DNA of 64,000 nt from Macrostomum lignano (Eukaryota): assembly GCA_002269645.1 (NCBI GenBank), contig NIVC01000891.1, positions 248,001-312,000 of the forward strand. Direction: 5' to 3'. The translations under genes and the position numbers were made by a program. Below the pieces are notes generated by a model. It was not told where the DNA came from. It did not search any database and saw only the letters and a list, made by a program, of their open reading frames with translations. This document shows positions 1 to 64,000 of this stretch, piece by piece (the first letter of the stretch is position 1; each line of letters starts with the position of its first letter).

Positions 1-429
1 AATCAACAAAACTAATCATCACCAAACTACTAAGCTAAACTACGGAATCAAAAGCACACGCTCGTACGGCTATCTGGCTTTAAAGAGGTAGCCTAATCAA
101 AATAATAAAAAAGAAAATAGGAGAGTAAACACATCTCAGTAAGGATAAGACAACACACGCACAGATACTTACCCGTCAGAAAGGAATTATTAGTACATTT
201 GAAAACAACACAGAAATAGCTAAAAGCCGGAAATGCCAGTGAGAAAGCCAGAGTTTCGGCATGCCAGACTTTGGCCAATCGAACTCAGCAACAGCAATAG
301 AGGGTTCGCTAAATAATTTCAGCGCCATGCCGAACCACAAAAAGCACAACAAATTCACAAAAGCTAAAAGCTACAAATGCCATAAGAAAAGCGACAGTAC
401 TTATTAATTACGACACCAAAGAATCTTAC

Positions 430-3400
430 CGAACTCTCCAGTGACACGTATTGCAGAATATCAGAATACGAGCACTCAACGATTTGACCAAATCCAGACA
501 CCAACCCAGAGCTCAGAGTGTTACCAGAGAAGGATGAAGTCAGGGAGCGAGAGTCCAAAGGTGAACGTAGAAAACTTTGAGAAGAAGTATTGCCTACATT
601 GCTTGGGTCAAAAGAGCTCGAACCTCCGCTCGCCTCAACTGAAGATATGCTTAGCGAAGAGGGGCGTCTTACAACTGCACCAGATTGCAGGCCTGGTGGA
701 CTGGATTCCAATCGCAACTCCTCAGCCTCCTTAAAAGCTTCCTGTGCATTCTTATCACACTGCTCTGCTGCTCCGTTGCTTTCCTGGTCTGCGCGCAGCT
801 CGAGCTCTTTGATTTCGGGCTTCAGCTGCTCTTGTCGCTCTTCTGACGGACGCGACTCGGCGGCTTGCGCGTCTGTTGGAGACACCTCGTCCTTGACCTC
901 AGCCTGCCCAGCAGCCTCTTCTGGCTTTGGTACTGCATCGCTTTCCTGGTCTGCGCGCAGCACGAGCTTTTTGGTTTCAGGCTTCAGCTGCTCTTGTCGC
1001 TCTTCTGACGGGCGCGACTCGGAAGCTTGCGCGTCTGTTGGAGCCGCCTCGTTCTTGACCTCAGCCTGCTTAACAGCATCTTCAGGCTTCGGAGCTTCTC
1101 GGCTCTCCTGATCTGCGCGCAGCTCGAGCTCTTTGGTTTCAGGCTTCACCTGCTCTTGTCGCTCTTCTGACGGACGCGACTCGGCGGCTTGCGCGTCTGT
1201 TGGAGACACCTCGTCCTTGACCTCAGCCTGCCCAGCAGCCTCTTCTGGCTTTGGTACTGCATCGCTTTCCTGGTCTGCGCGCAGCACGAGCTTTTTGGTT
1301 TCAGGCTTCAGCTGCTCTTGTCGCTCTTCTGACGGACGCGACTCGGAAGCTTGCGCGTCTGTTGGAGCCGCCTCGTTCTTGACCTCAGCCTGCTTAACAG
1401 CATCTTCAGGCTTCGGAGCTTCTCGGCTCTCCTGATCTGCGCGCAGCTCGAGCTCTTTGGTTTCAGGCTTCAGCTGCTCTTGTCGCTCTTCTGACGGACG
1501 CGACTCGGCGGCTTGCGCGTCTGTTGGAGCCGCCTCGTCCTTGACCTCAGTTTTTTCGGCAGCCTCTTCAGGCTTTGGAGCTTCTCGGCTCTCCTGATCT
1601 GCGCGCAGCTCGAGCTCTTTGGTTTCAGGCTTCAGCTGCTCTTGTCGCTCTTCTGACGGACGCGACTCGGCGGCCTCCGCCTCTGTTGGAGACACCTCGT
1701 CCTTGGCCTCAGCCTGCCCAGCAGCCTCTTCTGGCTTTGCTACTGCACCGCTTTCCTGGTCTGCGCGCAGCACGAGCTCTTTGGCTTCGGGCTTCAGCTG
1801 CTCTTGTCGCTCTTCTGACGGACGCGACTCTGAGGCCTCCGCCGCTGTTGGAGCCGCCTCGTCCTTGACCTCAGTCTTTTCGGCAGCCTCTTCAGGCTCC
1901 GGAGCCTCTCGGCTCTCCTGATCTCCACGCAGCTCGAGCTCTTTGGTTTCAGGCTTCAGCTGCTCTTGTCGCTCTTCTGACGGGCGCGACTCGGAAGCTT
2001 GCGCGTCTGTTGGAGCCGCCTCGTTCTTGACCTCAGCCTGCTTAACAGCCTCTTCAGGCTTCGGAGCTTTTCGGCTCTCCTGATCTGCGCGCAGCTCGAG
2101 CTCTTTGATTTCGGGCTTCAGCTGCTCTTGTCGCTCTTCTGACGGACGCGACTCGGCGGCTTGCGCGTCTGTTGGAGACACCTCGTCCTTGACCTCAGCC
2201 TGCCCAGCAGCCTCTTCTGGCTTTGGTACTGCATCGCTTTCCTGGTCTGCGCGCAGCACGAGCTTTTTGGTTTCAGGCTTCAGCTGCTCTTGTCGCTCTT
2301 CTGACGGGCGCGACTCGGAAGCTTGCGCGTCTGTTGGAGCCGCCTCGTTCTTGACCTCAGCCTGCTTAACAGCATCTTCAGGCTTCGGAGCTTCTCGGCT
2401 CTCCTGATCTGCGCGCAGCTCGAGCTCTTTGGTTTCAGGCTTCACCTGCTCTTGTCGCTCTTCTGACGGACGCGACTCGGCGGCTTGCGCGTCTGTTGGA
2501 GACACCTCGTCCTTGACCTCAGCCTGCCCAGCAGCCTCTTCTGGCTTTGGTACTGCATCGCTTTCCTGGTCTGCGCGCAGCACGAGCTTTTTGGTTTCAG
2601 GCTTCAGCTGCTCTTGTCGCTCTTCTGACGGACGCGACTCGGAAGCTTGCGCGTCTGTTGGAGCCGCCTCGTTCTTGACCTCAGCCTGCTTAACAGCATC
2701 TTCAGGCTTCGGAGCTTCTCGGCTCTCCTGATCTGCGCGCAGCTCGAGCTCTTTGGTTTCAGGCTTCAGCTGCTCTTGTCGCTCTTCTGACGGACGCGAC
2801 TCGGCGGCTTGCGCGTCTGTTGGAGCCGCCTCGTCCTTGACCTCAGTTTTTTCGGCAGCCTCTTCAGGCTTTGGAGCTTCTCGGCTCTCCTGATCTGCGC
2901 GCAGCTCGAGCTCTTTGGTTTCAGGCTTCAGCTGCTCTTGTCGCTCTTCTGACGGACGCGACTCGGCGGCCTCCGCCTCTGTTGGAGACACCTCGTCCTT
3001 GGCCTCAGCCTGCCCAGCAGCCTCTTCTGGCTTTGCTACTGCACCGCTTTCCTGGTCTGCGCGCAGCACGAGCTCTTTGGCTTCGGGCTTCAGCTGCTCT
3101 TGTCGCTCTTCTGACGGACGCGACTCTGAGGCCTCCGCCGCTGTTGGAGCCGCCTCGTCCTTGACCTCAGTCTTTTCGGCAGCCTCTTCAGGCTCCGGAG
3201 CCTCTCGGCTCTCCTGATCTCCACGCAGCTCGAGCTCTTTGGTTTCAGGCTTCAGCTGCTCTTGTCGCTCTTCTGACGGGCGCGACTCGGAAGCTTGCGC
3301 GTCTGTTGGAGCCGCCTCGTTCTTGACCTCAGCCTGCTTAACAGCCTCTTCAGGCTTCGGAGCTTTTCGGCTCTCCTGATCTGCGCGCAGCTCGAGCTCT

Positions 3401-6400
3401 TTGGTTTCAGGCTTCAGCTGCTCTTGTCGCTCTTCTGACGGACGCGACTCGGCAGCTTGTGCGTCTGTTGGAGACACCTCGTCCTTGACCCCAGCCTGCC
3501 CAGCAGCCCCTTCTGGCTTCGGTACTGCACCGCTTTCCTGGTCTGCGCGCAGCTCGAGCTCTTTGGTTTCAGGCTTCAGCTGCTCTTGTCGCTTTTCTGA
3601 CGGAAGTGACTCGGCGGGTTGCGCGTCTGTTGGAGCCGCCTCGTCCTTGACCTCAGTCTTTACGGCAGCCTCTTCAGGCTTTGGAGCTTCTCGGCTCTCC
3701 TGATCTGCGCGCAGCTCGAGCTCTTTGGTTTCGGGCTTCAGCTGCTCTTGTCGCTTTTCTGACGGACGCGACTCGGCGGCCTCCGCCTCTGTTGGAGAAA
3801 CCTCGTCCTTGAACTCATTCTGCCCAGCAGCCTGTTCTGGCTTTGGTACTGCATCGCTTTCCTGGTCTGCGCGCAGAACGAGCTCTTTGGTTTCGGGCTT
3901 CAGCTGCTCTTGTCGCTCTTCTGACGGGCGCGACTCGGCGGCTTGCGCGTCTGTTGGAGCCGGCTCGTCCTTGACCTCAGCCTGCTTAACAGCATCTTCA
4001 GGCTCCGGAGCTTCTTGGCTCTCCTGATCTGCGCGCAGCTCGAGCTCTTTGGCTTCGGGCTTCAGCTGCTCTTGTCGCTCTTCTGACGGACGCGACTCGG
4101 CGGCTTGCGCGTCTGTTGGAGCCGGCTCGTCCTTGACCTCAGCCTGCTTAACAGCATCTTCAGGCTCCGGAGCTTCTTGGCTCTCCTGATCTGCGCGCAG
4201 CTCGAGCTCTTTGGCTTTAAGCTTCGGCTGCTCTTGTCGCTCTTCTGACGGACGCGACTTGGCAGCTTGCGCGTCCGTTGGAGACACCTCGTCCTTGACC
4301 TCAGTCTTTTCGGCAGCCTCTTCAGGCTTTGGAGCTTCTTGGCTCTCCTGATCTGCGCGCAGCTCGATCTCTTTGGTTTCGGGCTTCAGCTGCTCTTGTC
4401 GCTCTTCTGACGGGCGCGACTTGGCGGCTTGCGCGTCTGTTGGAGCCGGCTCGTCCTTGACCTCAGCCTGCTTAACAACATCTTCAGGCTCCGGAGCTTC
4501 TCGGCTCTCCTGATCTGCGCGCAGCTCGAGCTCTTTGGCTTCGGGCTTCAGCTGCTCTTGTCGCTCTTCTGACGGACGCGACTCGGCGGCTTGCGCGTCT
4601 GTTCGAGCCGGCTCGTCCTTGACCTCAGCCTGCTTAACAGCATCTTCAGGCTCCGGAGCTTCTCGGCTCTCCTGATCTGCGCGCAGCTCGAGCTCTTTGG
4701 CTTTAAGCTTCAGCTGCTCTTGTCGCTCTTCTGATGGACGCGACTCGGCGGCCTCTGCCTCTGTTGGAGACACCTCGTCCTTGGCCTCAGCCTGCCCAGC
4801 AGCCTCTTCTGGCTTTGCTACTGCACCGCTTTCCTGGTCTGCGCGCAGCACGAGCTCTTTGGTTTCGGGCTTCAGCTGCTCTTGTCGCTCTTCTGACGGA
4901 CGCGACTCGGCGGCTTGCGCGTCTGTTGGAGCCGCCTCGTCCTTGACCTCAGTCTTTTCGGCAGCCTCTTCAGGCTTTGGAGCTTCTTGGCTCTCCTGAT
5001 CTGCGCGCAGCTCGATCTCTTTGGTTTCGGGCTTCAGCTGCTCTTGTCGCTCTTCTGACGGGCGCGACTTGGCGGCTTGCGCGTCTGTTGGAGCCGGCTC
5101 GTCCTTGACCTCAGCCTGCTTAACAACATCTTCAGGCTCCGGAGCTTCTCGGCTCTTCTGATCTGCGCGCAGCTCGAGCTCTTTGGCTTCGGGCTTCAGC
5201 TGCTCTTGTCGCTCTTCTGACGGACGCGACTCGGCGGCTTGCGCGTCTGTTGGAGCCGCCTCGTCCTTGACCTCAGTCTTTTCGGCAGCCTCTTCAGGCT
5301 TCGGAGCTTCTCGGCTCTCCTGATCTGCGCGCAGCTCGAGCTCTTTGGCTTCGGGCTTCAGCTGCTCTTGTCGCTCTTCTGACGAACGCGACTCGGCGGC
5401 CTGTTTCTGTTTTGCAGTTAATCTCTCAGTCTTTGTGTTCTCTGGTACTGGGTGACTTGGTTCCTGCAATTGTACAGCCAATACGCGGGTTTCAGATTCG
5501 ACAACCACTGTCGTTTCCGAACCCTTGCGGCCTGCACTGAGTTGCTCTTTACTCTCAGTGGCGGTATCGGTTGTGACCTTCGACGGCACGGATGTCGTAT
5601 CAGCATCCTCACTAAGCCTATGCTCTGCATTGTCAATTTTAGGCCGTTCCCAATCGACTAATTCCGTTGGCTTTGAGGATTCAAAACCTAATGCCTCAGA
5701 AGGCTGAGCAGCCTCTTCTAGCTTTGGCGCTGCAGCGATTTTCGGGTCCGCGCGCAGCTCGAGCTCTTTGGCTTCGGGCTTCAGCTGCTCTTGTCGCTCT
5801 TCTGACGGACGCGACTCGGCGGCTTGCGCGTCTGTTGGAGCCGGCTCGTCCTTGACCTCAGCCTGCTTAACAGCATCTTCAGGCTCCGGAGCTTCTTGGC
5901 TCTCCTGATCTGCGCGCAGCTCGAGCTCTTTGGTTTCGGGCTTCAGCTGCTCTTGTCGCTCTTCTGACGGACGCGACTCGGCAGCTTGCGCGTCTGTTGG
6001 AGACACCTCGTCCTTGACCTCAGTCTTTTCGGCAGCCTCTTCAGGCTTTGGAGCTTCTCGGCTCTCCTGATCTGCGCGCAGCTCGATCTCTTTGGTTTCG
6101 GGCTTCAGCTGCTCTTGTCGCTCTTCTGACGGACGCGACTCGGCGGCTTGCGCGTCTGTTGGAGCCGCCTCGTCCTTGACCTCAGTCTTTACGGCAGCCT
6201 CTTCAGGCTTTGGAGCTTCTTGGCTCTCCTGATCTGCGCGCAGCTCGATCTCTTTGGTTTCGGGCTTCAGCTGCTCTTGTCGCTCTTCTGACGGGCGCGA
6301 CTTGGCGGCTTGCGCGTCTGTTGGAGCCGGCTCGTCCTTGACCTCAGCCTGCTTAACAACATCTTCAGGCTCCGGAGCTTCTCGGCTCTTCTGATCTGCG

Positions 6401-9400
6401 CGCAGCTCGAGCTCTTTGGCTTCGGGCTTCAGCTGCTCTTGTCGCTCTTCTGACGGACGCGACTCGGCGGCTTGCGCGTCTGTTGGAGCCGGCTCGTCCT
6501 TGACCTCAGCCTGCTTAACAGCATCTTCAGGCTCCGGAGCTTCTTGGCTCTCCTGATCTGCGCGCAGCTCGAGCTCTTTGGCTTTAAGCTTCAGCTGCTC
6601 TTGTCGCTCTTCTGACGGACGCGACTTGGCAGCTTGCGCGTCCGTTGGAGACACCTCGTCCTTGACCTCAGTCTTTTCGGCAGCCTCTTCAGGCTTTGGA
6701 GCTTCTCGGCTCTCCTGATCTGCGCGCAGCTCGATCTCTTTGGTTTCGGGCTTCAGCTGCTCTTGTCGCTCTTCTGATGGACGCGACTCGGCGGCCTCCG
6801 CCTCTGTTGGAGACACCTCGTCCTTGGCCTCAGCCTGCCCAGCAGCCTCTTCTGGCTTTGCTACTGCACCGCTTTCCTGGTCTGCGCGCAGCACGAGCTC
6901 TGTGGCTTCGGGCTTCAGCTGCTCTTGTCGCTCTTCTGACAGACGCGACTCGGCGGCTTGCGCGTCTGTTGGAGCCGCCTCGTCCTTGACCTCAGTTTTT
7001 TCGGCAGCCTCTTCAGGCTTCGGAGCTTCTCGGCTCTCCTGATCTGCGCGCAGCTCGAGCTCTTTGGTTTCGGGCTTCAGCTGCTCTTGTCGCTTTTCTG
7101 ACGGACGCGACTCGGCGGCCTCCGCCTCTGTTGGAGAAACCTCGTCCTTGAACTCATTCTGCCCAGCAGCCTGTTCTGGCTTTGGTACTGCATCGCTTTC
7201 CTGGTCTGCGCGCAGAACGAGCTCTTTGGTTTCGGGCTTCAGCTGCTCTTGTCGCTCTTCTGACGGGCGCGACTTGGCGGCTTGCGCGTCTGTTGGAGCC
7301 GGCTCGTCCTTGACCTCAGCCTGCTTAACAACATCTTCAGGCTCCGGAGCTTCTCGGCTCTCCTGATCTGCGCGCAGCTCGAGCTCTTTGGCTTCGGGCT
7401 TCAGCTGCTCTTGTCGCTCTTCTGACGGACGCGACTCGGCGGCTTGCGCGTCTGTTCGAGCCGGCTCGTCCTTGACCTCAGCCTGCTTAACAGCATCTTC
7501 AGGCTCCGGAGCTTCTCGGCTCTCCTGATCTGCGCGCAGCTCGAGCTCTTTGGCTTTAAGCTTCAGCTGCTCTTGTCGCTCTTCTGATGGACGCGACTCG
7601 GCGGCCTCTGCCTCTGTTGGAGACACCTCGTCCTTGGCCTCAGCCTGCCCAGCAGCCTCTTCTGGCTTTGCTACTGCACCGCTTTCCTGGTCTGCGCGCA
7701 GCACGAGCTCTTTGGTTTCGGGCTTCAGCTGCTCTTGTCGCTCTTCTGACGGACGCGACTCGGCGGCTTGCGCGTCTGTTGGAGCCGCCTCGTCCTTGAC
7801 CTCAGTCTTTTCGGCAGCCTCTTCAGGCTTTGGAGCTTCTTGGCTCTCCTGATCTGCGCGCAGCTCGATCTCTTTGGTTTCGGGCTTCAGCTGCTCTTGT
7901 CGCTCTTCTGACGGGCGCGACTTGGCGGCTTGCGCGTCTGTTGGAGCCGGCTCGTCCTTGACCTCAGCCTGCTTAACAACATCTTCAGGCTCCGGAGCTT
8001 CTCGGCTCTTCTGATCTGCGCGCAGCTCGAGCTCTTTGGCTTCGGGCTTCAGCTGCTCTTGTCGCTCTTCTGACGGACGCGACTCGGCGGCTTGCGCGTC
8101 TGTTGGAGCCGCCTCGTCCTTGACCTCAGTCTTTTCGGCAGCCTCTTCAGGCTTCGGAGCTTCTCGGCTCTCCTGATCTGCGCGCAGCTCGAGCTCTTTG
8201 GCTTCGGGCTTCAGCTGCTCTTGTCGCTCTTCTGACGAACGCGACTCGGCGGCCTGTTTCTGTTTTGCAGTTAATCTCTCAGTCTTTGTGTTCTCTGGTA
8301 CTGGGTGACTTGGTTCCTGCAATTGTACAGCCAATACGCGGGTTTCAGATTCGACAACCACTGTCGTTTCCGAACCCTTGCGGCCTGCACTGAGTTGCTC
8401 TTTACTCTCAGTGGCGGTATCGGTTGTGACCTTCGACGGCACGGATGTCGTATCAGCATCCTCACTAAGCCTATGCTCTGCATTGTCAATTTTAGGCCGT
8501 TCCCAATCGACTAATTCCGTTGGCTTTGAGGATTCAAAACCTAATGCCTCAGAAGGCTGAGCAGCCTCTTCTAGCTTTGGCGCTGCAGCGATTTTCGGGT
8601 CCGCGCGCAGCTCGAGCTCTTTGGCTTCGGGCTTCAGCTGCTCTTGTCGCTCTTCTGACGGACGCGACTCGGCGGCTTGCGCGTCTGTTGGAGCCGGCTC
8701 GTCCTTGACCTCAGCCTGCTTAACAGCATCTTCAGGCTCCGGAGCTTCTTGGCTCTCCTGATCTGCGCGCAGCTCGAGCTCTTTGGCTTCGGGCTTCAGC
8801 TGCTCTTGTCGCTCTTCTGACGGACGCGACTCGGCAGCTTGCGCGTCTGTTGGAGACACCTCGTCCTTGACCTCAGTCTTTTCGGCAGCCTCTTCAGGCT
8901 TTGGAGCTTCTCGGCTCTCCTGATCTGCGCGCAGCTCGATCTCTTTGGTTTCGGGCTTCAGCTGCTCTTGTCGCTCTTCTGACGGACGCGACTCGGCGGC
9001 TTGCGCGTCTGTTGGAGCCGCCTCGTCCTTGACCTCAGTCTTTACGGCAGCCTCTTCAGGCTTTGGAGCTTCTTGGCTCTCCTGATCTGCGCGCAGCTCG
9101 ATCTCTTTGGTTTCGGGCTTCAGCTGCTCTTGTCGCTCTTCTGACGGGCGCGACTTGGCGGCTTGCGCGTCTGTTGGAGCCGGCTCGTCCTTGACCTCAG
9201 CCTGCTTAACAACATCTTCAGGCTCCGGAGCTTCTCGGCTCTTCTGATCTGCGCGCAGCTCGAGCTCTTTGGCTTCGGGCTTCAGCTGCTCTTGTCGCTC
9301 TTCTGACGGACGCGACTCGGCGGCTTGCGCGTCTGTTGGAGCCGGCTCGTCCTTGACCTCAGCCTGCTTAACAGCATCTTCAGGCTCCGGAGCTTCTTGG

Positions 9401-18400: not shown

Positions 18401-21400
18401 TCAGCCTGCCCAGCAGCCTCTTCTGGCTTTGCTACTGCACCGCTGTCCTGGTCTGCGCGCAGCTCGAGCTCTTTGGTTTCGGGCTTCAGCTGCTCTTGTC
18501 GCTCTTCTGATGGACGCGACTCGACGGCCTCCACCGCTGTTGGAGCCGCCTCGTCTTTGACCTCAGTCTTTTCGGCAGCCTCTTCAGGCTTCGGAGCTTC
18601 TCGGCTCTTCTGATCTGCGCGAAACTCGAGCTCTTTGGCTTCGGGCTTCAGCTGCTCTCGTCGCTCTTCTGATGGACGCGACTCGGCGGCCTCCACCGCT
18701 GTTGGAGCCGCCTCGTCCTTGACCTCAGTCTTTTCGGCAGCCTCTTCAGGCTTCGGAGCTTCTTGGCTCTCCTGATCTGCGCGCAGCTCGAGCTCTTTGG
18801 CTTCAGGCTTCAGCTGCTCTTGTCGCTCTTCTGACGGACGCGACTCGGCGGCCTCCGCCTCTGTTGGAGAAACCTCGTCCTTGAACTCATTCTGCCCAGC
18901 AGCCTGTTCTGGCTTTGGTACTGCATCGCTTTCCTGGTCTGCGCGCAGCTCGAGCTCTTTGGCTTCGGGCTTCAGCTGCTCTTGTCGCTCTTCTGACGGA
19001 CGCGACTCGGCGGCTTGCGCGTCTGTTGGAGCCGGCTCGTCCTTGACCTCAGCCTGCTTAACAACATCTTCAGGCTCCGGAGCTTCTCGGCTCTCCTGAT
19101 CTGCGCGCAGCTCGAGCTCTTTGGCTTCGGGCTTCAGCTGCTCTTGTCGCTCTTCTGACGGACGCGACTCGGCGGCCTCCACCGCTGTTGGAGCCGCCTC
19201 GTCTTTGACCTCAGTCTTTTCGGCAGCCTCTTCAGGCTTCGGAGCTTCTTGGCTCTCCTGATCTGCGCGCAGCTCGAGCTCTTTGGCTTTAAGCTTCAGC
19301 TGCTCTTGTCGCTCTTCTGACGGACGCGACTCGGCGGCCTCCGCCTCTGTTGGAGAAACCTCGTCCTTGAACTCATTCTGCCCAGCAGCCTGTTCTGGCT
19401 TTGGTACTGCATCGCTTTCCTGGTCTGCGCGCAGCTCGAGCTCTTTGGCTTCGGGCTTCAGCTGCTCTTGTCGCTCTTCTGACGGACGCGACTCGGCGGC
19501 TTGCGCGTCTGTTGGAGCCGGCTCGTCCTTGACCTCAGCCTGCTTAATAACATCTTCAGGCTCCGGAGCTTCTCGGCTCTCCTGATCTGCACGCAGCTCG
19601 AGCTCTTTGGTTTCAGGCTTCAGCTGCTCTTGTCGCTCTTCTGATGGACGCGACTCGGCGGCTTCCGTGTCTGTTGGAGACACCTCATCCTTGACCTCAG
19701 TCTTTTCGGCATCCTCTTCAGGCCTCGGAGCTTCTTGGCTCTCCTGATCTGCGCGCAGCTCGAGCTCTTTGGCTTCGGGCTTCAGCTGCTCTTGTCGCTC
19801 TTCTGACGGACGCGACTCGGCGGCTTGCGCGTCTGTTGGAGCCGGCTCGTCCTTGACCTCAGCCTGCTTAACAGCATCTTCAGGCTCCGGAGCTTCTTGG
19901 CTCTCCTGATCTGCGCGCAGCTCGAGCTCTTTGGCTTTAAGCTTCAGCTGCTCTTGTCGCTCGTCTGACGGACGCGACTCGGCGGCCTCCGCGTCTGTTG
20001 GAGCCGCCTCGTCCTTGACCTCAGTTTTTTCGGCAGCCTCTTCAGGTTTCGGAGCTTCTCGGCTCTCCTGATCTGCGCGCAGCTCGAGCTCTTTGGCTTC
20101 GGGCTTCAGCTGCTCTTGTCGCTCTTCTGACGAACGCGACTCGGCGGCCTGTTCCTGTTTTGCAGTTAATCTCTCAGTCTTTGTGTTCTCTGGTACTGGG
20201 TGACTTGGTTCCTGCAATTGTACAGCCAATACGCGGGTTTCAGATTCGACAACCACTGTCGTTTCCGAACCCTTGGGGCCTGCGCTGAGTTGCTCTTTAC
20301 TCTCAGTGGCGGTATCGGTTGTGACCTTCGACGGCACGGATGTCGTATCAGCATCCTCACTAAGCCTATGCTCTGCATTGTCAATTTTAGGCCGTTCCCA
20401 ATCGACTAATTCCGTTGGCTTTGAGGATTCAAAGCCTAATGCCTCAGAAGGCTGAGCAGCCTCTTCTAGCTTTGGCGCTGCAGCGATTTTCTGGTCCGCG
20501 CGCAGCTCGAGCTCTTTGGCTTCGGGCTTCAGCTGCTCTTGTCGCTCTTCTGACGGACGCGACTCGGCAGCTTGCGCGTCTGTTGGAGACACCTCATCCT
20601 TGACTTCAGTCTTTTCGGCAGCCTCTTCAGGCTTCGGAGCTTCTTGGCTCTCCTGATCTGCGCGCAGCTCGAGCTCTTTGGCTTCGGGCTTCAGCTGCTC
20701 TTGTCGCTCTTCTGACGGACGCGACTCGGCGGCTTGCGCGTCTGTTGGAGCCGGCTCGTCCTTGACCTCAGCCTGCTTAACAGCATCTTTAGGCTCCGGA
20801 GCTTCTTGGCTCTCCTGATCTGCGCGCAGCTCGAGCTCTTTGCTTTCGGGCTTCAGCTGCTCTTGTCGCTCTTCTGACGGACGCGACTCGGCGGCCTCCG
20901 CCTCTGTTGGAGACACCTCGTCCTTGGCCTCAGCCTGCCCAGCAGCCTCTTCTGGCTTTGCTACTGCACCGCTTTCCTGGTCTGCGCGCAGAACGAGCTC
21001 TTTGGCTTCGGGCTTCAGCTGCTCTTGTCGCTCTTCTGACGGGCGCGACTTGGCGGCTTGCGCGTCTGTTGGAGCCGGCTCGTCCTTGACCTCAGCCTGC
21101 TTAACAACATCTTCAGGCTCCGGAGCTTCTCGGCTCTCCTGATCTGCGCGCAGCTCGAGCTCTTTGGCTTCGGGCTTCAGCTGCTCTTGTCGCTCTTCTG
21201 ACGGACGCGACTCGGCGGCTTGCGCGTCTGTTGGAGCCGGCTCGTCCTTGACCTCAGCCTGCTTAACAGCATCTTCAGGCTCCGGAGCTTCTTGGCTCTC
21301 CTGATCTGCGCGCAGCTCGAGCTCTTTGGCTTTAAGCTTCAGCTGCTCTTGTCGCTCTTCTGACGGACGCGACTCGGCAGCTTGCGCGTCTGTTGGAGAC

Positions 21401-24400
21401 ACCTCGTCCTTGACCTCAGTCTTTTCGGCAGCCTCTTCAGGCTTTGGAGCTTCTCGGCTCTCCTGATCTGCGCGCAGCTCGATCTCTTTGGTTTCGGGCT
21501 TCAGCTGCTCTTGTCGCTCTTCTGACGGACGCGACTCGGCGGCCTCCGCGTCTGTTGGAGCCGCCTCGTCCTTGACCTCAGTCTTTTCGGCAGCCTCTTC
21601 AGGCTTTGGAGCTTCTCGGCTTTCCTGATCTGCGCGCAGCTCGAGCTCTTTGGCTTCGGGCTTCAGCTGCTCTTGTCGCTCTTCTGACGGACGCGACTCG
21701 GCGGCCTCCGCCTCTGTTGGAGACACCTCGTCCTTGACCTCAGCCTGCCCAGCAGCCCCTTCTGGCTTCGGTACTGCATCGCTTTCCTGGTCTGCGCGCA
21801 GAACGAGCTCTTTGGTTTCGGGCTTCAGCTGCTCTTGTCGCTCTTCTGACGGACGCGACTCGGCGGCTTGCACGTCTGTTGGAGCCGCCTCGTCCTTGAC
21901 CTCAGTCTTTTCGGCAGCCTCTTCAGGCTTTGGAGCTTCTCGGCTCTCCTGATCTGCGCGCAGCTCGAGCTCTTTGGCTTCGGGCTTCAGCTGCTCTTGT
22001 CGCTCTTCTGACGGACGCGACTCGGCGGCCTCCACCGCTGTTGGAGCCGCCTCGTCTTTGACCTCAGTCTTTTCGGCAGCCTCTTCAGGCTTCGGAGCTT
22101 CTTGGCTCTCCTGATCTGCGCGCAGCTCGAGCTCTTTGGCTTCGGGCTTCAGCTGCTCTTGTCGCTCTTCTGACGGACGCGACTCGGCGGCCTCCGCCTC
22201 TGTTGGAGAAACCTCGTCCTTGAACTCATTCTGCCCAGCAGACTGTTCTGGCTTTGGTACTGCATCGCTTTCCTGGTCTGCGCGCAGAACGAGCTCTTTG
22301 GTTTCGGGCTTCAGCTGCTCTTGTCGCTCTTCTGACGGGCGCGACTCGGCGGCTTGCGCGTCTGTTGGGGCCGGCTCGTCCTTGACCTCAGCCTGCTTAA
22401 CAACATCTTCAGGCTCCGGAGCTTCTCGGCTCTCCTGATCTGCGCGCAACTCGAGCTCTTTGGTTTCAGGCTTCAGCTGCTCTTGTCGCTCTTCTGACGG
22501 ACGCGACTCGGCGGCCTCCGCCTCTGTTGGAGACACCTCGTCCTTGGCCTCAGCCTGCCCAGCAGCCTCTTCAGGCTTCGGTACTGCACCGCTTTCCTGG
22601 TCTGCGCGCAGCACGAGCTCTGTGGCTTCGGGCTTCAGCTGCTCTTGTCGCTCTTCTGACGAACGCGACTCGGCGGCCTGTTCCTGTTTTGCAGTTAATC
22701 TCTCAGTCTTTGTGTTCTCTGGTACTGGGTGACTTGGTTCCTGCAATTGTACAGCCAATACGCGGGTTTCAGATTCGACAACCACTGTCGTTTCCGAACC
22801 CTTGGGGCCTGCGCTGAGTTGCTCCTTACTCTCAGTGGCGGTATCGGTTGTGACCTTCGACGGCACGGATGTCGTATCAGCATCCTCACTAAGCCTATGC
22901 TCTGCATTGTCAATTTTAGGCCGTTCCCAATCGACTAATTCCGTTGGCTTTGAGGATTCAAAGCCTAATGCCTCAGAAGGCTGAGCAGCCTCTTCTAGCT
23001 TTGGCGCTGCAGTGATTTTCTGGTTCGCGCGCAGCTCGAGCTTTTTGGCTTCAGGCTTCAGCTGCTCTTGTCGCTCTTCTGACGGACGCGACTCGGCGGC
23101 TTGCGCGTCTGTTGGAGCCGGCTCGTCCTTGACCTCAGCCTGCTTAACAGCATCTTCAGGCTCCGGAGCTTCTTGGCTCTCCTGATCTGCGCGCAGCTCG
23201 AGCTCTTTGGCTTTAAGCTTCAGCTGCTCTTGTCGCTCGTCTGACGGACGCGACTCGGCGGCCTCCGCGTCTGTTGGAGCCGGCTCGTCCTTGACCTCAG
23301 TCTTTTCGGCAGCCTCTTCAGGCCTCGGAGCTTCTTGGCTCTCCTGATCTGCGCGCAGCTCGAGCTCTTTGGCTTCGGGCTTCAGCTGCTCTTGTCGCTC
23401 TTCTGACGGACGCGACTCGGCGGCTTGCGCGTCTGTTGGAGCCGGCTCGTCCTTGACCTCAGCCTGCTTAACAGCATCTTCAGGCTCCGGAGCTTCTTGG
23501 CTCTCCTGATCTGCGCGCAGCTCGAGCTCTTTGGCTTTAAGCTTCAGCTGCTCTTTTCGCTCTTCTGACGGACGCGACTCGGCAGCTTGCGCGTCTGTTG
23601 GAGACACCTCGTCCTTGACCTCAGTCTTTTCGGCAGCCTCTTCAGGCTTTGGAGCTTCTCGGCTCTCCTGATCTGCGCGCAGCTCGATCTCTTTGGTTTC
23701 GGGCTTCAGCTGCTCTTGTCGCTCTTCTGACGGACGCGACTCGGCAGCTTGCGCGTCTGTTGGAGACACCTCGTCCTTGACCTCAGTCTTTTCGGCAGCC
23801 TCTTCAGGCTTTGGAGCTTCTCGGCTCTCCTGATCTGCGCGCAGCTCGATCTCTTTGGTTTCGGGCTTCAGCTGCTCTTGTCGCTCTTCTGACGGACGCG
23901 ACTCGGCGGCTTGCGCGTCTGTTGGAGAAACCTCGTCCTTGAACTCATTCTGCCCAGCAGCCTGTTCTGGCTTTGGTACTGCATCGCTTTCCTGGTCTGC
24001 GCGCAGAACGAGCTCTTTGGTTTCGGGCTTCAGCTGCTCTTGTCGCTCTTCTGACGGGCGCGACTCGGCGGCTTGCGCGTCTGTTGGAGCCGCCTCGTCC
24101 TTGACCTCAGTTTTTTCGGCAGCCTCTTCAGGCTTCGGAGCTTCTCGGCTCTCCTGATCTGCGCGCAGCTCGAGCTCTTTGGTTTCAGGCTTAAGCTGCT
24201 CTTGTCGCTCTTCTGACGGACGCGACTCGGCGGCCTCCGCCTCTGTTGGAGACACCTCGTCCTTGGCCTCAGCCTGCCCAGCAGCCTCTTCTGGCTTTGG
24301 TACTGCATCGCTTTCCTGGTCTGCGCGCAGCACGAGCTCTGTGGCTTCGGGCTTCAGCTGCTCTTGTCGCTCTTCTGACGGACGCGACTCGGCGGCTTGC

Positions 24401-27400
24401 GCGTCTGTTGGAGCCGCCTCGTCCTTGACCTCAGTCTTTTCGGCAGCCTCTTCAGGCTTCAAAGATTCTCGGCTCTCCTGATCTGCGCGCAGCTCGAGCT
24501 CTTTGGCTTCGGGCTTCAGCTGCTCTTGTCGCTCTTCTGACGAACGCGACTCGGCGGCCTGTTCCTGTTTTACAGTTAATCTCTCAGTCTTTGTGTTCTC
24601 TGGTACTGGGTGACTTGGTTCCTGCAATTGTACAGCCAATACGCGGGTTTCAGATTCGACAACCACTGTCGTTTCCGAACCCTTGGGGCCTGCGCTGAGT
24701 TGCTCTTTACTCTCAGTGGCGGTATCGGTTGTGACCTTCGACGGCACGGATGTCGTATCAGCATCCTCACTAAGCCTATGCTCTGCATTGTCAATTTTAG
24801 GCCGTTCCCAATCGACTAATTCCGTTGGCTTTGAGGATTCAAAGCCTAATGCCTCAGAAGGCTGAGCAGCCTCTTCTAGCTTTGGCGCTGCAGCGATTTT
24901 CTGGTCCGCGCGCAGCTCGAGCTCTTTGGCTTCAGGCTTCAGCTGCTCTTGTCGCTCTTCTGACGGACGCAACTCAGCGGCTTCCGTGTCTGTTGGAGAC
25001 ACCTCATCCTTGACCTCAGTCTTTTCGGCAGCCTCTTCAGGCCTCGGAGCTTCTTGGCTCTCCTGATCTGCGCGCAGCTCGAGCTCTTTGGCTTCGGGCT
25101 TCAGCTGCTCTTGTCGCTCTTCTGACGGACGCGACTCGGCGGCTTGCGCGTCTGTTGGAGCCGGCTCGTCCTTGACCTCAGCCTGCTTAACAGCATCTTC
25201 AGGCTCCGGAGCTTCTTGGCTCTCCTGATCTGCGCGCAGCTCGAGCTCTTTGGCTTTAAGCTTCAGCTGCTCTTGTCGCTCTTCTGACGGACGCGACTCG
25301 GCAGCTTGCGCGTCTGTTGGAGACACCTCGTCCTTGACCTCATCCAGCCCAGCAGCCTCTTCTGGCTTTGGTACTGCATCGCTTTCCTGGTCTGCGCGCA
25401 GCACGAGCTCTTTGGTTTCGGGCTTCAGCTGCTCTTGTCGCTCTTCTGACGGACGCGACTCGGCGGCTTGCGCGTCTGTTGGAGCCGCCTCGTCCTTGAC
25501 CTCAGTCTTTTCGGCAGCCTCTTCAGGCTTTGGAGCTTCTCGGCTCTCCTGATCTGCGCGCAGCTCGAGCTCTTTGGCTTCGGGCTTCAGCTGCTCTTGT
25601 CGCTCTTCTGACGGACGCGACTCGGCGGCCTCCACCGCTGTTGGAGCCGCCTCGTCTTTGACCTCAGTCTTTTCGGCAGCCTCTTCAGGCTTCGGAGCTT
25701 CTTGGCTCTCCTGATCTGCGCGCAGCTCGAGCTCTTTGGCTTCGGGCTTCAGCTGCTCTTGTCGCTCTTCTGACGGACGCGACTCGGCGGCCTCCGCCTC
25801 TGTTGGAGAAACCTCGTCCTTGAACTCATTCTGCCCAGCAGACTGTTCTGGCTTTGGTACTGCATCGCTTTCCTGGTCTGCGCGCAGAACGAGCTCTTTG
25901 GTTTCGGGCTTCAGCTGCTCTTGTCGCTCTTCTGACGGGCGCGACTCGGCGGCTTGCGCGTCTGTTGGGGCCGGCTCGTCCTTGACCTCAGCCTGCTTAA
26001 CAACATCTTCAGGCTCCGGAGCTTCTCGGCTCTCCTGATCTGCGCGCAACTCGAGCTCTTTGGTTTCAGGCTTCAGCTGCTCTTGTCGCTCTTCTGACGG
26101 ACGCGACTCGGCGGCCTCCGCCTCTGTTGGAGACACCTCGTCCTTGGCCTCAGCCTGCCCAGCAGCCTCTTCAGGCTTCGGTACTGCACCGCTTTCCTGG
26201 TCTGCGCGCAGCTCGAGCTCTGTGGCTTCGGGCTTCAGCTGCTCTTGTCGCTCTTCTGACGAACGCGACTCGGCGGCCTGTTCCTGTTTTGCAGTTAATC
26301 TCTCAGTTTTTGTGTTCTCTGGTACTGGGTGACTTGGTTCCTGCAATTGTACAGCCAATACGCGGGTTTCAGATTCGACAACCACTGTCGTTTCCGAACC
26401 CTTGGGGCCTGCGCTGAGTTGCTCCTTACTCTCAGTGGCGGTATCGGTTGTGACCTTCGACGGCACGGATGTCGTATCAGCATCCTCACTAAGCCTATGC
26501 TCTGCATTGTCAATTTTAGGCCGTTCCCAATCGACTAATTCCGTTGGCTTTGAGGATTCAAAGCCTAATGCCTCAGAAGGCTGAGCAGCCTCTTCTAGCT
26601 TTGGCGCTGCAGCGATTTTCTGGTCCGCGCGCAGCTCGAGCTCTTTGGCTTCAGGCTTCAGCTGCTCTTGTCGCTCTTCTGACGGACGCAACTCAGCGGC
26701 TTCCGTGTCTGTTGAAGACACCTCATCCTTGACCTCAGTCTTTTCGGCAGCCTCTTCAGGCCTCGGAGCTTCTTGGCTCTCCTGATCTGCGCGCAGCTCG
26801 AGCTCTTTGGCTTCGGGCTTCAGCTGCTCTTGTCGCTCTTCTGACGGACGCGACTCGGCGGCCTCCACCTCTGTTGGAGACACCTCGTCCTTGACCTCAT
26901 CCTGCCCAGCAGCCTGTTCTGGCTTTGGTACTGCATCGCTTTCCTGGTCTGCGCGCAGCTCGAGCTCTTTGGTTTCAGGCTTCAGCTGCTCTTGTCGCTC
27001 TTCTGACGGACGCGACTCGGCGGCTTGCGCGTCTGTTGGAGCCAACTCGTCCTTGACCTCAGCCTGCTTAACAACATCTTCAGGCTCCGGAGCTTCTTGG
27101 CTCTCCTGATCTGCGCGCAGCTCGAGCTCTTTGGCTTTAAGCTTCAGCTGCTCTTGTCGCTCTTCTGATGGACGCGACTCGGCGGCCTCCACCGCTGTTG
27201 GAGCCGCCTCGTCCTTGACCTCAGTCTTTTCGGCAGCCTCTTCAGGCTTTGGAGCTTCTCGGCTCTCCTGATATGCGCGCAGCTCGAGCTCTTTGGCTTC
27301 GGGCTTCAGCTGCTCTTGTCGCTCTTCTGACGGACGCGACTCGGCGGCCTCCGCCTCTGTTGGAGACACCTCGTCCTTGAACTCATTCTGCCCAGCAGCC

Positions 27401-29823
27401 TGTTCTGGCTTTGGTACTGCATCGCTTTCCTGGTCTGCGCGCAGAACGAGCTCTTTGGTTTCGGGCTTCAGCTGCTCTTGTCGCTCTTCTGACGGGCGCG
27501 ACTCGGCGGCTTGCGCGTCTGTTGGAGCCGCCTCGTCCTTGACCTCAGTCTTTTCGGCAGCCTCTTCAGGCTTCGGAGCTTCTCGGCTCTCCTGATCTGC
27601 GCGCAGCTCGAGCTCTTTGGTTTCGGGCTTCAGCTGCTCTTGTCGCTCTTCTGACGGACGCGACTCGGCGGCCTCCGCCTCTGTTGGAGACACCTCGTCC
27701 TTGGCCTCAGCCTGCCCAGCAGCCTCTTCTGGCTTTGGTACTGCATCGCTTTCCTGGTCTGCGCGCAGCACGAGCTCTGTGGCTTCGGGCTTCAGCTGCT
27801 CTTGTCGCTCTTCTGACGGACGCGACTCGGCGGCTTGCGCGTCTGTTGGAGCCGCCTCGTCCTTGACCTCAGTCTTTTCGGCAGCCTCTTCAGGCTTCGG
27901 AGCTTCTCGGCTCTCCTGATCTGCGCGCAGCTCGAGCTCTTTGGCTTCGGGCTTCAGCTGCTCTTGTCGCTCTTCTGACGGACGCGACTCGGCGGCCTCC
28001 ACCGCTGTTGGAGCCGCCTCGTCTTTGACCTCAGTCTTTTCGGCAGCCTCTTCAGGCTTCGGAGCTTCTTGGCTCTCCTGATCTGCGCGCAGCTCGAGCT
28101 CTTTGGCTTCGGGCTTCAGCTGCTCTTGTCGCTCTTCTGACGGACGCGACTCGGCGGCCTCCGCCTCTGTTGGAGAAACCTCGTCCTTGAACTCATTCTG
28201 CCCAGCAGACTGTTCTGGCTTTGGTACTGCATCGCTTTCCTGGTCTGCGCGCAGAACGAGCTCTTTGGTTTCGGGCTTCAGCTGCTCTTGTCGCTCTTCT
28301 GACGGGCGCGACTCGGCGGCTTGCGCGTCTGTTGGGGCCGGCTCGTCCTTGACCTCAGCCTGCTTAACAACATCTTCAGGCTCCGGAGCTTCTCGGCTCT
28401 CCTGATCTGCGCGCAACTCGAGCTCTTTGGTTTCAGGCTTCAGCTGCTCTTGTCGCTCTTCTGACGGACGCGACTCGGCGGCCTCCGCCTCTGTTGGAGA
28501 CACCTCGTCCTTGGCCTCAGCCTGCCCAGCAGCCTCTTCAGGCTTCGGTACTGCACCGCTTTCCTGGTCTGCGCGCAGCACGAGCTCTGTGGCTTCGGGC
28601 TTCAGCTGCTCTTGTCGCTCTTCTGACGAACGCGACTCGGCGGCCTGTTCCTGTTTTACAGTTAATCTCTCAGTCTTTGTGTTCTCTGGTACTGGGTGAC
28701 TTGGTTCCTGCAATTGTACAGCCAATACGCGGGTTTCAGATTCGACAACCACTGTCGTTTCCGAACCCTTGGGGCCTGCACTGAGTTGCTCTTTACTCTC
28801 AGTGGCGGTATCGGTTGTGACCTTCGACGGCACGGATGTCGTATCAGCATCCTCACTAAGCCTATGCTCTGCATTATCAATTTTAGGCCGTTCCCAATCG
28901 ACTAATTCCGTTGGCTTTGAGGATTCAAAGCCTAATGCCTCAGAAGGCTGAGCAGCCTCTTCTAGCTTTGGCGCAGCAGCGATTTTCTGGTCCGCGCGCA
29001 GCTCGAGCTTTTTGGCTTCAGGCTTCAGCTGCTCTTGTCGCTCTTCTGACGGACGCAACTCAGCGGCTTCCGTGTCTGTTGGAGACACCTCATCCTTGAC
29101 CTCAGTCTTTTCGGCAGCCTCTTCAGGCCTCGGAGCTTCTTGGCTCTCCTGATCTGCGCGCAGCTCGAGCTCTTTGGCTTCGGGCTTCAGCTGCTCTTGT
29201 CGCTCTTCTGACGGACGCGACTCGGCGGCTTGCGCGTCTGTTGGAGCCGGCTCGTCCTTGACCTCAGCCTGCTTAACAGCATCTTCAGGCTCCGGAGCTT
29301 CTTGGCTCTCCTGATCTGCGTGCAGCTCGAGCTCTTTGGCTTCGGGCTTCAGCTGCTCTTGTCGCTCTTCTGACGGACGCGACTCGGCGGCCTCCACCTC
29401 TGTTGGAGACACCTCGTCCTTGACCTCATCCTGCCCAGCAGCCTCTTCTGGCTTTGGTACTGCATCGCTTTCCTGGTCTGCGCGCAGCACGAGCTCTTTG
29501 GTTTCGGGCTTCAGCTGCTCTTGTCGCTCTTCTGACGGACGCGACTCGGCGGATTGCGCATCAGTTGGAGACATCTCGTGATATTTTATTGGCTTTAATT
29601 GTACAGCTAAAACCAAAGTCTCTGAATAGGTCACAGTGGCTGGTTGGTTGTCTGTATCGGTTTCTATAATATTTTTTTCAGGAGTACGAATGAGTGACGG
29701 TGAGGAAAGAAATGATTTGGAGGTTGGCGTTGGTGGATTGGGAGCCTGGATTTGGTGAGTTCGCGGTGACGTACTTTTCTGATAATACTGCTGGTCACTG
29801 TAGTCAGAGATACTTAGTACTGG
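430..29823 (-). CDS. Exon 18, giant ~29.4-kb exon encoding ~9,800 aa of acidic PEVK-like tandem repeats; three -1 indels at ~16776, ~12773 and ~9885
   Basis: Acceptor ccattcaaacag|CCA (29823) and donor TCG|GTAAGA (430). ORFs 16666-29841, 12620-16756, 9768-12683 and 364-9747 abut at single-base deletions relative to sister repeat copies. There is no intron-like interruption of the 162/423-bp periodicity. Confidence 0.83.
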
Positions 29824-62594: not shown

Positions 62595-63225
62595 TAAATT
62601 TCTGCGGCTCATGGGGGTTGCTGAGATGCTGCGGCTCATGGTGAGGGGTGGCTGAGATGCTGTGGCTCATGGAGGGTTGCTGAGATACCAGGTGGCTCAT
62701 GGGGGTTGCTGAGATACTGTGGCTCATGGGGAGGGGGTGGCTGAGATGCTGTGGCTAATAGGGGTTTGCTGAGATGCTGTGGCTCATGGGGGGTTGCTGA
62801 GATGCTGTGGCTAATAGGGAGGGGGTGGCTGAGATGCTGTGGCTCATGGGAGGGGGTGGCTGAGATACTGTGGCTCATGGGAGGGGTTTGCTGAGATGCT
62901 ATGGCTCATGGGGGGTGGCTAAGATGTTGTGGCTCGTGGGAGGGGTGGCTGAGATGTTGTGGCTCGTGGGAAGGGGGTGGCTGAGATACTGTGGCTCATG
63001 GGGAGGGGGTGGCTAAGATGCTATGGCTCATGGGGGGTGGCTGAAATGCTGTGGCTCATGGGGGGTTGCTGAGATGCTGTGGCTCATGGGAGGGGTGGCA
63101 GAGATGCTGTGGCTCGTGGGAGGGTGTGGCTGAGATGCTGTGGCTCGTAGGAGGGTGTGGCTGAGATGCTGTGGCTCATGGGGAGTGGGTGGCTGAGATA
63201 CTATGGCTTATTGGGGGTTGCTCAG
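62595..63225. repeat. Upstream G-rich minisatellite, ~27-30-bp degenerate unit
   Basis: ggggtggctgagatgctgtggctcatgg variants. Confidence 0.9.
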
Positions 63226-64000
63226 AAAGGGTCAATTGGGAGTTTTTTGTAGGCCTAGGATCACATGGAGAGTAAGAGTAAGCATTAGGGTTAAGCTGTG
63301 GCTTAAAGAGAGGCTTTGATGGCATTGATGCCAAAGCTCAAAGGGTACCTTAGATATCTTATACCTTAATACCTTAGATATCTTATGCTAGATAACTAGC
63401 ATTCAAGGCAACAGTTCAAGGCAACTGTTTTTTGTTTTAAATATCACTTTTCTAGGGAACTAGCAATCATAACTATACAAGGTGAAAGCTACAATAGTTT
63501 ATTAAAAAAATTTCTTTGTTGTTTTTTTAATAGAAGGGCAAAGATGATTAGTCTTTGCATTAAAATCCTGCCTTTTGGCACTAAATTAATGCTAAAATCT
63601 TGCCTCTAGCACTAAATTGATACTAAAATATTGCCTTTGGCACTAAAATCTTGTCTTATAGCACTAAAGACATTGACTATGGGTATTATGAATTTTGGTT
63701 TGTGATTGCCCCCACCCTGAGACTAGATGAAAATCTGGTTATTAGCAACAATTTATTAGAATATATATTTACTATGCTAAAAACTATCAAAGAAACCAAT
63801 ATATTCAAAACACCTGCATGAGACAAATGATCTAATATTAAGATAAGATCTTGTAATTCAATCACTTAAAAATTAGGACTAATAAGCTAGCCACTGAAAG
63901 AAAAGATAAACTATTTAAAGCTAAGCTAGTTAAAGCAAAGCTTGAATCTCATTGATAAATTAAATATTAACTTATGAAATATAATGGGCTTAAAGATAAA

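Follow-up and report, generated by a model that had tools for sequence, protein, structure and literature searches.

The usual picture of plakins and spectraplakins is one of rigid modular rods made of spectrin repeats, coiled coils and plakin-repeat globules. In the closest known counterparts of the gene considered here, namely Drosophila Shot B, mammalian MACF1b and BPAG1b, and C. elegans VAB-10A, a CH1-CH2 pair is followed in order by a plakin domain and by plectin or plakin repeats encoded in large exons (family layout from PMC3352950), and in the first three a very large extra module stands after the plakin domain. We analysed a 64,000-nucleotide stretch of the flatworm Macrostomum lignano genome (assembly GCA_002269645.1, contig NIVC01000891.1, positions 248,001 to 312,000 of the forward strand), hereafter the window, in which positions are counted from the first letter. 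Its minus strand carries a plakin-family gene with what appears to be the same order of parts and likewise with a very large extra module after the plakin domain. Unlike its four counterparts, however, this gene continues after the plectin repeats into what appears to be a single 29.4-kb exon, the giant exon, encoding a chain of ~9,800 residues that is acidic and of neither plakin nor spectrin type.

Several other giant repetitive proteins invite comparison with this chain. The PEVK region of titin, together with the PEVK-like regions of Sallimus and TTN-1, resembles it in being a long, proline-containing, glutamate-rich series of low-complexity tandem repeats that is predicted to be disordered and belongs to a giant cytoskeletal protein. 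The initial annotation had called the chain titin-PEVK-like, a label that does not hold as a statement of membership and is best read as a functional analogy only. Titin PEVK is about 70% P+E+V+K and is built of ~28-residue PPAK motifs and poly-E, whereas the M. lignano chain reaches 45% (0.448), has a 54-residue unit with a conserved helix-prone 24-mer, gives no PPAK match in 1,280 residues, is not flanked by Ig/Fn3 domains, and is ~4 times longer than human PEVK. By analogy, an entropic-spring mechanism like that of titin PEVK is nevertheless plausible. The giant exons of AHNAK, MUC16 and TTN are likewise single, very large coding exons of tandem repeats, and the 29.4 kb found here exceeds these human records of ~17-22 kb. 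The sequences are unrelated, however: AHNAK repeats are 128 residues long and basic or amphipathic, and MUC16 is a secreted or transmembrane mucin, whereas the M. lignano exon would encode an acidic cytoplasmic plakin module. Within M. lignano itself, the adhesion proteins Mlig-ap1 (5,407 residues) and Mlig-ap2 (14,794 residues) are giant and repetitive and are comparable to the plakin product in total size, but they are secreted and Cys-rich, and are either Lys/Arg-rich or equipped with vWD, TSP-1, EGF and lectin domains (PMC6410801). We rejected the idea that the array is one of these adhesives, as it is acidic (pI 4.4), Cys-free and joined to CH, plakin and plectin sequences.

Results and Discussion

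A giant exon of 54-residue repeats

The giant exon lies between an acceptor, AAACAG/CC at 29823, and a strong donor, TCG/GTAAGA after 430 (a slash marks the junction), which are the two boundaries that the initial annotation had assigned to it. Between a unique head and a unique tail it consists almost throughout of a 54-residue unit with the consensus SEERQEQLKPEAKELELRADQESREAPKPEEAAEQAEVKDEVAPTDAQAAESRP in minus-strand translation, and Tandem Repeats Finder reports period-162 arrays over 778-29579 with 85-89% matches and 0% indels. The 152 full units fall into 11 blocks of 3, 12, 8, 9, 13, 19, 14, 15, 15, 15 and 29 units. Each of the ten spacers between blocks begins with a unit cut after 21 residues, which is followed by a unique segment of 120 residues, KIAAAPKLEEAAQPSEALGFESSKPTELVDWERPKIDNAEHRLSEDADTT...AESRS, and the spacers are nearly identical to one another (0-10 differences in 423 nt). 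The annotation's description of the repeat was also borne out. Once the reading frame is repaired as set out below, the exon is dominated by E (22.7%), A (14.7%), P (9.1%), K (8.4%), Q (8.1%) and S (7.3%), its 10 Trp residues are confined to the 10 spacers, and the only two Cys residues are both in the unique tail, so that the unit itself is Cys-free.

Unit subtypes follow one another in an order that varies from block to block, and neighbouring blocks have sub-strings in common. Such a pattern is characteristic of unequal crossing-over and not of an assembly loop. That the assembly had collapsed or expanded the repeat was considered and rejected, both on the distinct and partly shared subtype orders of the blocks and because the same architecture is found at a paralogous locus in the Mlig_3_7 assembly. 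The exact copy number of the unit is uncertain.

Three frame breaks are most likely consensus errors

The initial annotation had described the exon as uninterrupted, and as assembled it is not. Three frameshifts split 29823..430 into four open stretches in three different phases (29859-16669, 16795-12623, 12857-9771 and 10005-367, all on the minus strand). Each switch of frame corresponds to a 1-nt deletion in a short homopolymer relative to sister copies that are otherwise identical, and because the three deletions sum to -3 the original frame is back after 9885. A continuous reading of 29823..430 requires one base to be inserted at each of the three sites; it then comprises 9,799 codons and yields a product of 9,799 residues with a mass of 1.09 MDa, a pI of 4.4 and a net charge of -1,341.

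The three frameshifts are most likely errors of the long-read consensus, and several observations lead to this reading. All three are singletons in homopolymers whose flanks are identical to those of sister copies, and there is not one nonsense substitution in the ~9,800 codons of the repaired exon. A 1-nt insertion and a garbled stretch in the adjoining plectin array also look like unpolished consensus, and 20 kb of the paralogous array in Mlig_3_7 contain a dozen switches of frame. Comparison of 2.5 kb of unique exon sequence with the paralog revealed no indels, while the introns do show some. Finally, the M. lignano assemblies are based on PacBio continuous long reads, and the genome is highly repeat-rich and duplicated in part (PMC5730564).

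The repeat units evolve as coding sequence

Taken together, conservation of frame, depletion of nonsense changes and indels, in-frame junctions and transcript support mark 29823..430 as a protein-coding exon, with the three singleton 1-nt deletions as a caveat. The unit (162 nt) and the sequence that replaces it at a spacer (423 nt) both have lengths that are multiples of three, and apart from those three homopolymer deletions no indels occur among the 152 units. Of 145 distinct substitution variants, not one gives rise to a stop, where neutrality with the observed mix of transitions and transversions predicts 7.9 (P≈3e-4). Calculated over 82 distinct unit sequences, the ratio of nonsynonymous to synonymous variation (pN/pS) comes to 0.60 for the unit as a whole and is unevenly spread along it, at 0.36 for residues 1-23, 0.78 for residues 24-48 and 0.28 for residues 49-54. 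The corresponding divergence ratio (dN/dS) against the paralog in the unique exon sequence is 0.25-0.7, a comparison of low power from which the value for exon 30337-30018 was left out.

The giant exon is spliced in frame to plectin-repeat exons

Gene models place the array in the same transcript as the plectin repeats. UniProt entry A0A1I8GMD7 (P0064), a fragment of 786 residues, is 99-100% identical to the window and runs from the last plectin repeats (to 32471) through 32382-32312 and 31929-30414 into the giant exon from 29819. All of its junctions are canonical GT-AG, its last part maps to 29820-29377 at 100% identity, and it matches Pfam Plectin with E=1e-15. A second entry, A0A1I8GYN2 (P0002), derives from the paralog and adds the 30337-30018 exon ahead of the repeats. 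The join from 30018 to 29823 is in frame (..FPVGFSTQ/PVLSISDYSD..), so that both this junction and the wider proposal of the initial annotation, that the giant exon is joined in frame to the exons upstream of it, are upheld, the latter by P0064 for the window and by P0002 for the paralog. Two tandem acceptors, at 29823 and 29819, stand 4 nt apart (CAG/CCAG/TA) and open the same frame of the giant exon; they pair by phase with the phase-0 donor at 30018 and the phase-1 donor at 30414. Because the two acceptors each restore the one frame for donors of different phase, the 30337-30018 exon appears to be an optional cassette. P0002 also departs from the window in two ways. It lacks an in-frame piece of 651 nt (217 residues) of the Ser/Glu-rich exon (window 30895-31545), and it enters the repeats at the equivalent of 29592 instead of 29823; a deletion on the paralog's side, an exitron or an artefact of the gene model could account for these differences.

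The paralogous locus, on Mlig_3_7 contig NIVC01000201.1, has plectin repeats, Ser/Glu-rich exon and array in the same order at 95.5% identity, with an array of no less than 23 kb. Gene models on this contig (P0001 and P0066; PAA88133.1 and PAA88136.1) belong to the transcriptional unit Mlig027975. Since M. lignano genes were annotated purely from RNA-seq assemblies (PMC5730564), these models imply that the array is transcribed. The Mlig_3_7 gene is itself split over two contigs: NIVC01004408.1 ends inside the gene, and the array is on NIVC01000201.1.

Upstream exons identify a plakin-family gene

The initial annotation had also placed CH-CH, plakin and plectin-repeat exons upstream of the giant exon on the same strand, and this architecture is upheld, for the plakin domain by homology only (Table 1). 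A tandem CH actin-binding domain is present, with CH1 at 57533-58913 and CH2 at 47032-48244; Pfam detects CH in the window open reading frame (ORF) at 47008-47586, and the paralog model P0003 has 2 CH stretches (E=3.3e-41). A 659-residue query made of the actin-binding domain and plakin region matched plectin-like proteins and dystonins from molluscs, arthropods and vertebrates over 96% of its length at 30-36% identity (E ~1e-75), and the proteins matched carry PF21020, PF17902 and PF00435. A plakin domain is made of spectrin-like repeats with an embedded SH3; in direct Pfam searches of the window ORFs and of P0003, Spectrin_4 was found below threshold only and SH3_10 was not found. At least 25 Plectin repeats (PF00681) lie upstream of the giant exon on its strand, in 16 stretches at 32424-35042 (E=8e-118), 8 stretches at 35377-37785 (E=1.4e-62) and a further match at 39566-41341 (E=1.9e-18). 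The plectin array has frame lesions of its own, namely a 1-nt insertion (GAG-A-CAG) at ~35030 and a garbled stretch of ~55 nt at 35340-35395. A rough sum of exons puts the product encoded within the window at ~14,400-14,500 residues, which makes the earlier figure of at least 14,400 plausible.

On the evidence of its actin-binding domain and plectin repeats we assign the gene to the plakin family. Spectraplakins share a layout with a dystrophin-like spectrin-repeat rod downstream of the plakin and plakin-repeat region, C-terminal EF-hands and a microtubule-binding GAR (GAS2-related) domain, by which they are defined, and within the spectrin superfamily only they have the GAR domain (PMC3352950). 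In the present gene, which the initial annotation had called a spectraplakin and which is a candidate for that class, these parts would lie past position 1, and the window holds only 429 nt downstream of the giant exon. The exon could thus hold an internal place, as does the plakin-repeat insert in Shot B, MACF1b and BPAG1b, or stand near the end of the gene in the manner of VAB-10A.

Table 1. Positions in the window of the giant exon, its parts and the other features of the plakin-family gene
Feature	Position (nt)	Strand	Remarks
Giant exon	430..29823	(-)	29,394 nt in the assembly; 9,799 codons once one base is added at each of three sites
Unique head of giant exon	29536..29823	(-)	96 residues, P/S/T/Q-rich; ends with spacer-like ..ETLVLAVQL.. 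motif and partial unit
Repeat array	778..29535	(-)	152 full 54-residue units (162 nt each), 11 blocks
Spacer 1	28627..28986	(-)	120-residue unique segment KIAAAPKLEEAAQPSEALGFESSKPTELVDWERPKIDNAEHRLSEDADTT...AESRS after unit truncated at 21 residues
Spacer 2	26260..26619	(-)	
Spacer 3	24541..24900	(-)	
Spacer 4	22660..23019	(-)	
Spacer 5	20131..20490	(-)	
Spacer 6	16631..16989	(-)	holds frameshift site 1
Spacer 7	13940..14299	(-)	
Spacer 8	11088..11447	(-)	
Spacer 9	8236..8595	(-)	
Spacer 10	5383..5742	(-)	nucleotide sequence identical to spacer 9
Frameshift 1	16775..16777	(-)	CCC vs CCCC or CCGC in paralogous spacers; 1-nt deletion; inside spacer 6
Frameshift 2	12773..12774	(-)	AA vs AAA in 11 otherwise matching copies; 1-nt deletion
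Frameshift 3	9885..9885	(-)	C vs CC in matching copies; 1-nt deletion; original frame regained
Unique Ser-rich tail of giant exon	430..777	(-)	116 residues, ..NGAAEQCDK...ECSYSDILQYVSLESS; no Pfam match or database homologue
Donor GTAAGA and readthrough	364..429	(-)	GT at 429-428; if unspliced, 22 further codons, stop at 366-364
Upstream exon	30018..30337	(-)	..DKTGVPEA...PVGFSTQ; in paralog model P0002, skipped in P0064
S/E/D-rich exon	30414..31929	(-)	no Pfam match; plectin-repeat-like stretch at start; donor GAAG/GTAAGC
Small exon	32312..32382	(-)	DIERSGSGDASAVGVAPGSPQSDK
Plectin-repeat exons	32471..37785	(-)	300-nt x 10.6 array, 97% identity, 32601-35799; more divergent 150-nt array, 36697-37633
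Further plectin-repeat-containing exons	38601..41341	(-)	GC-rich
Plakin-domain region	41386..47448	(-)	exons broken by minisatellite-filled introns; end of CH2 at 47032-47448
CH2 exon, first part	48026..48244	(-)	
Four CH1 exons	57533..58913	(-)	58913-58851, 58576-58472, 57783-57700, 57625-57533
First coding exon	61684..61803	(-)	MNSFLFGRRKAGADPRL...; 100% identical to P0003 residues 1-40
Intron minisatellites	38152-38608, 41399-41727, 42809-43394, 44967-45341, 46539-47033, 47577-47984		
Intron minisatellites, further	48406-50090, 55311-56000, 57966-58454, 60213-60951, 62602-63242		

The chain is predicted to be expanded and mostly disordered

The physical character proposed for the chain by the initial annotation (acidic, of low hydrophobicity and largely disordered) agrees with what we predict for it from its pI of 4.4, the AlphaFold2 scores and its charge and hydropathy. 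An AlphaFold2 model of unit-unit-spacer-unit-unit, built from a single sequence and of low confidence, has a mean predicted local distance difference test score (pLDDT) of 55 and a predicted template modelling score of 0.19. In every unit it makes the first ~24 residues helical (pLDDT 70-83) and leaves the remainder of the unit and nearly the whole spacer as coil. Each module is thus predicted to consist of a conserved, helix-prone, charged segment of ~24 residues, SEERQEQLKPEAKELELRADQES, and a Pro/Glu/Ala-rich coil of ~30 residues. The fraction of charged residues is 0.43, the net charge per residue -0.14 and the charge-patterning parameter kappa ~0.06; acidic residues make up 28% of the chain, which falls on the disordered side of the Uversky plot and has a contour length of ~3.7 µm. 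By these charge statistics it would behave as an expanded, non-collapsing polyampholyte or polyelectrolyte. Pfam searches with 1,280 residues of the array, with the head-proximal exon and with the tail returned no family, a PDB sequence search gave no match, and Rfam found nothing in the window.

No homologues found outside M. lignano

Matches to a query of unit plus spacer were limited to entries from M. lignano, and of the 1.84 billion representative proteins covered by an exhaustive HMMER search, those matched were three M. lignano fragments and, weakly, a bacterial PKD-repeat protein, a fourth match that was judged spurious. No description of the gene was found in literature searches on plectin, plakins and spectraplakins in Macrostomum, among the papers listed on spectraplakins in flatworms, or under the identifiers Mlig027975 and Mlig001914, the supplements of PMC5730564 included. 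We take the gene to be real and undescribed in the literature searched, and its acidic repeat chain to have no homologue outside M. lignano among the proteins covered. The novelty asserted by the initial annotation stands in this sense and must be qualified in another, for unnamed or misnamed fragments are already in UniProt and NCBI. Public annotation splits the gene across contigs, its fragments appearing as "Glutaredoxin domain-containing" (P0064), "UCH domain-containing" (P0002) and "hypothetical protein", and the window reveals one gene. The two domain names are unsupported, since Pfam finds only Plectin in P0064 and nothing in P0002.

A possible megadalton tether and its alternatives

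We consider it fairly probable that 29823..430 is a genuine, transcribed, protein-coding giant exon of an M. lignano plakin-family cytolinker and that it works as an extensible tether or spacer. In the gene as seen here, the CH1-CH2 actin-binding domains, the plakin-domain region, the plectin-repeat region and the Ser/Glu-rich exon are followed by the giant exon for a chain of ~9,800 residues, with a mass of 1.1 MDa and a net charge of about -1,340, that comprises 152 modules of 54 residues and 10 near-identical spacers of 120 residues. Because a strongly charged and well-mixed polyampholyte is unable to collapse, such a chain may act as an extensible tether or spacer of great length, its contour being ~3.7 µm. 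It would thereby serve as an entropic-spring element between the N-terminal half, which would bind actin and intermediate filaments, and the part encoded downstream, and may allow cytoskeletal coupling to survive the large deformations of a soft-bodied and highly contractile animal. The sites suggested by the initial annotation, such as muscle attachment and anchor cells, are speculative candidates for such a role. A more specific form of the proposal, in which a plakin or spectraplakin of 14,500 residues or more acquired a 1.1-MDa acidic, disordered, micron-scale elastic chain from the single 29.4-kb exon, independently of titin and specifically in this flatworm lineage, is one that we put forward only tentatively.

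Several observations weigh against the proposal that this exon encodes a tether. As assembled, the ORF would stop at 16669 after ~4,400 residues, and the frameshifts could be real in this copy. The overall constraint on amino acids is weak (pN/pS of 0.60, with 42 synonymous variants against 37 expected). A unit free of stops makes the array open by construction, and with a minisatellite in almost every intron of the gene this means that ORF length alone is weak evidence for coding. The RNA-derived gene models come from the paralogous NIVC01000201.1 rather than from this exact copy, and the AlphaFold2 model suffers from its single-sequence input and low confidence. The helix-prone 24-mer is conserved more tightly than the remainder of the unit, a hint that its role is specific, in binding or in structure, and not purely entropic. 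Finally, a spring requires binding ends on both sides, and the downstream end was not reached through the tail, as a 126-residue query from the end of the exon had no match among 5.8 billion proteins and no next exon was found by this route.

The 24-mer in particular raises the question of whether the array is mainly a multivalent scaffold or a polymer brush rather than a load-bearing spring, an alternative that is the main functional rival of the tether and that we think rather unlikely. As a scaffold, the chain would bind a partner such as Ca2+, basic proteins or a cytoskeletal filament, either through its 162 copies of the helix-prone motif (AAESRP-SEERQEQLKPEAKELELRADQES) or through its acidic side chains; as a brush, it would set the spacing of filaments in the manner of neurofilament side-arms or the projection domains of microtubule-associated proteins. 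A scaffold would explain why residues 1-23 and 49-54 are nearly invariant (pN/pS 0.28-0.36, vs 0.78 for residues 24-48) and why residues 1-24 are the only part of the unit predicted to be helical, and the net charge of -1,341 with 28% acidic residues suits it as well. No known binding motif or domain was detected by Pfam or in the PDB, however, and the partial conservation of the unit could in part be a trace of how its subtypes diverged under concerted evolution. Sequence data do not tell a scaffold from a tether.

Two further alternatives concern whether the array is made as part of the plakin at all. The window copy may be a decaying duplicate, or homeologue, in the partly duplicated genome of the DV1 line, so that its lesions are real and it yields a truncated protein or none. 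We judge this unlikely, even though one gene contains five frame-disrupting lesions, a paralogous copy exists, and the DV1 genome includes 180 Mb of duplicated blocks at >=95% identity (PMC5730564). Decay would not be expected to confine itself to three homopolymer singletons with flanks identical to sister repeats, to spare ~9,800 codons from any nonsense substitution, or to leave 2.5 kb of unique exon sequence without an indel against the paralog while introns have some and dN/dS is 0.25-0.7; moreover, the lesion at 35340-35395 resembles consensus noise, and the Mlig_3_7 array has many more frame breaks of a kind typical of assembly error. Alternatively, the array could give rise to a separate product, either through a spliced-leader trans-spliced mRNA that starts at the single in-frame Met (exon residue 84, ..KYHEM/SPTDAQ..) or as an open but non-coding satellite in an intron or 3' untranslated region. 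M. lignano does have many polycistronic transcriptional units that are resolved by trans-splicing (PMC5730564), almost every intron of the plakin gene contains a minisatellite, and one open frame in a 162-nt unit is not improbable by chance. This explanation nonetheless seems very improbable to us. Two gene models from the databases link the exon in cis and in frame with the exons before it, and the tandem acceptors at 29823 and 29819 lead to one and the same frame from donors that differ in phase. Unit and spacer have lengths divisible by three, indels are absent and stop variants depleted. The unique head and tail also stay open in that frame up to a consensus donor, and a protein begun at the Met would lack both a signal peptide and any other N-terminal feature.

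If the tether proposal is correct, a megadalton acidic disordered insert would add a new mechanical principle to the plakins, that of a very long, soft and charged tether. The exon would then be among the longest coding exons of animals and the protein among the largest cytoskeletal proteins recorded. Given that M. lignano is tractable by RNA interference, in situ hybridisation and transgenesis, the function of a megadalton intracellular entropic spring would also become approachable.

Other features of the plakin gene

Base composition differs sharply between parts of the gene (positions 40000-48000 against 30000-38000), with a GC content of 63-67% in the plakin-domain and first plectin exons, 45-47% in the main plectin-repeat exons and 59-60% in the giant exon. 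The high-GC plakin and first plectin exons encode protein rich in Ala, Arg, Leu and Gln, and a (GGC)n run lies at 39915-39961. The 300-nt plectin array (32601-35799) is very young and of higher order, each unit being two plectin-type modules of ~50 residues.

Almost every intron of the gene contains a minisatellite, with units of 17-72 nt in 8-39 copies at 83-99% identity. The same minisatellites occur in the same places in the Mlig_3_7 paralog on NIVC01004408.1 (L002), and their copy numbers differ; an array with a 42-nt unit, for example, extends over 1.7 kb in the window and ~3.7 kb in the paralog (L002 25749-29504). The long intron between CH1 and CH2 also holds a (GTGA)n microsatellite at 53292-54535 (1.24 kb, ~312 copies, 91% matches), which yields spurious "ORFs" of 445-456 residues. 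Upstream of the paralogous plakin gene, in a part that would correspond to sequence past window position 64000, and on the opposite strand, stand three tandem His_Phos_1 (histidine phosphatase) genes (L002 891-5402, NIVC01004408.1).

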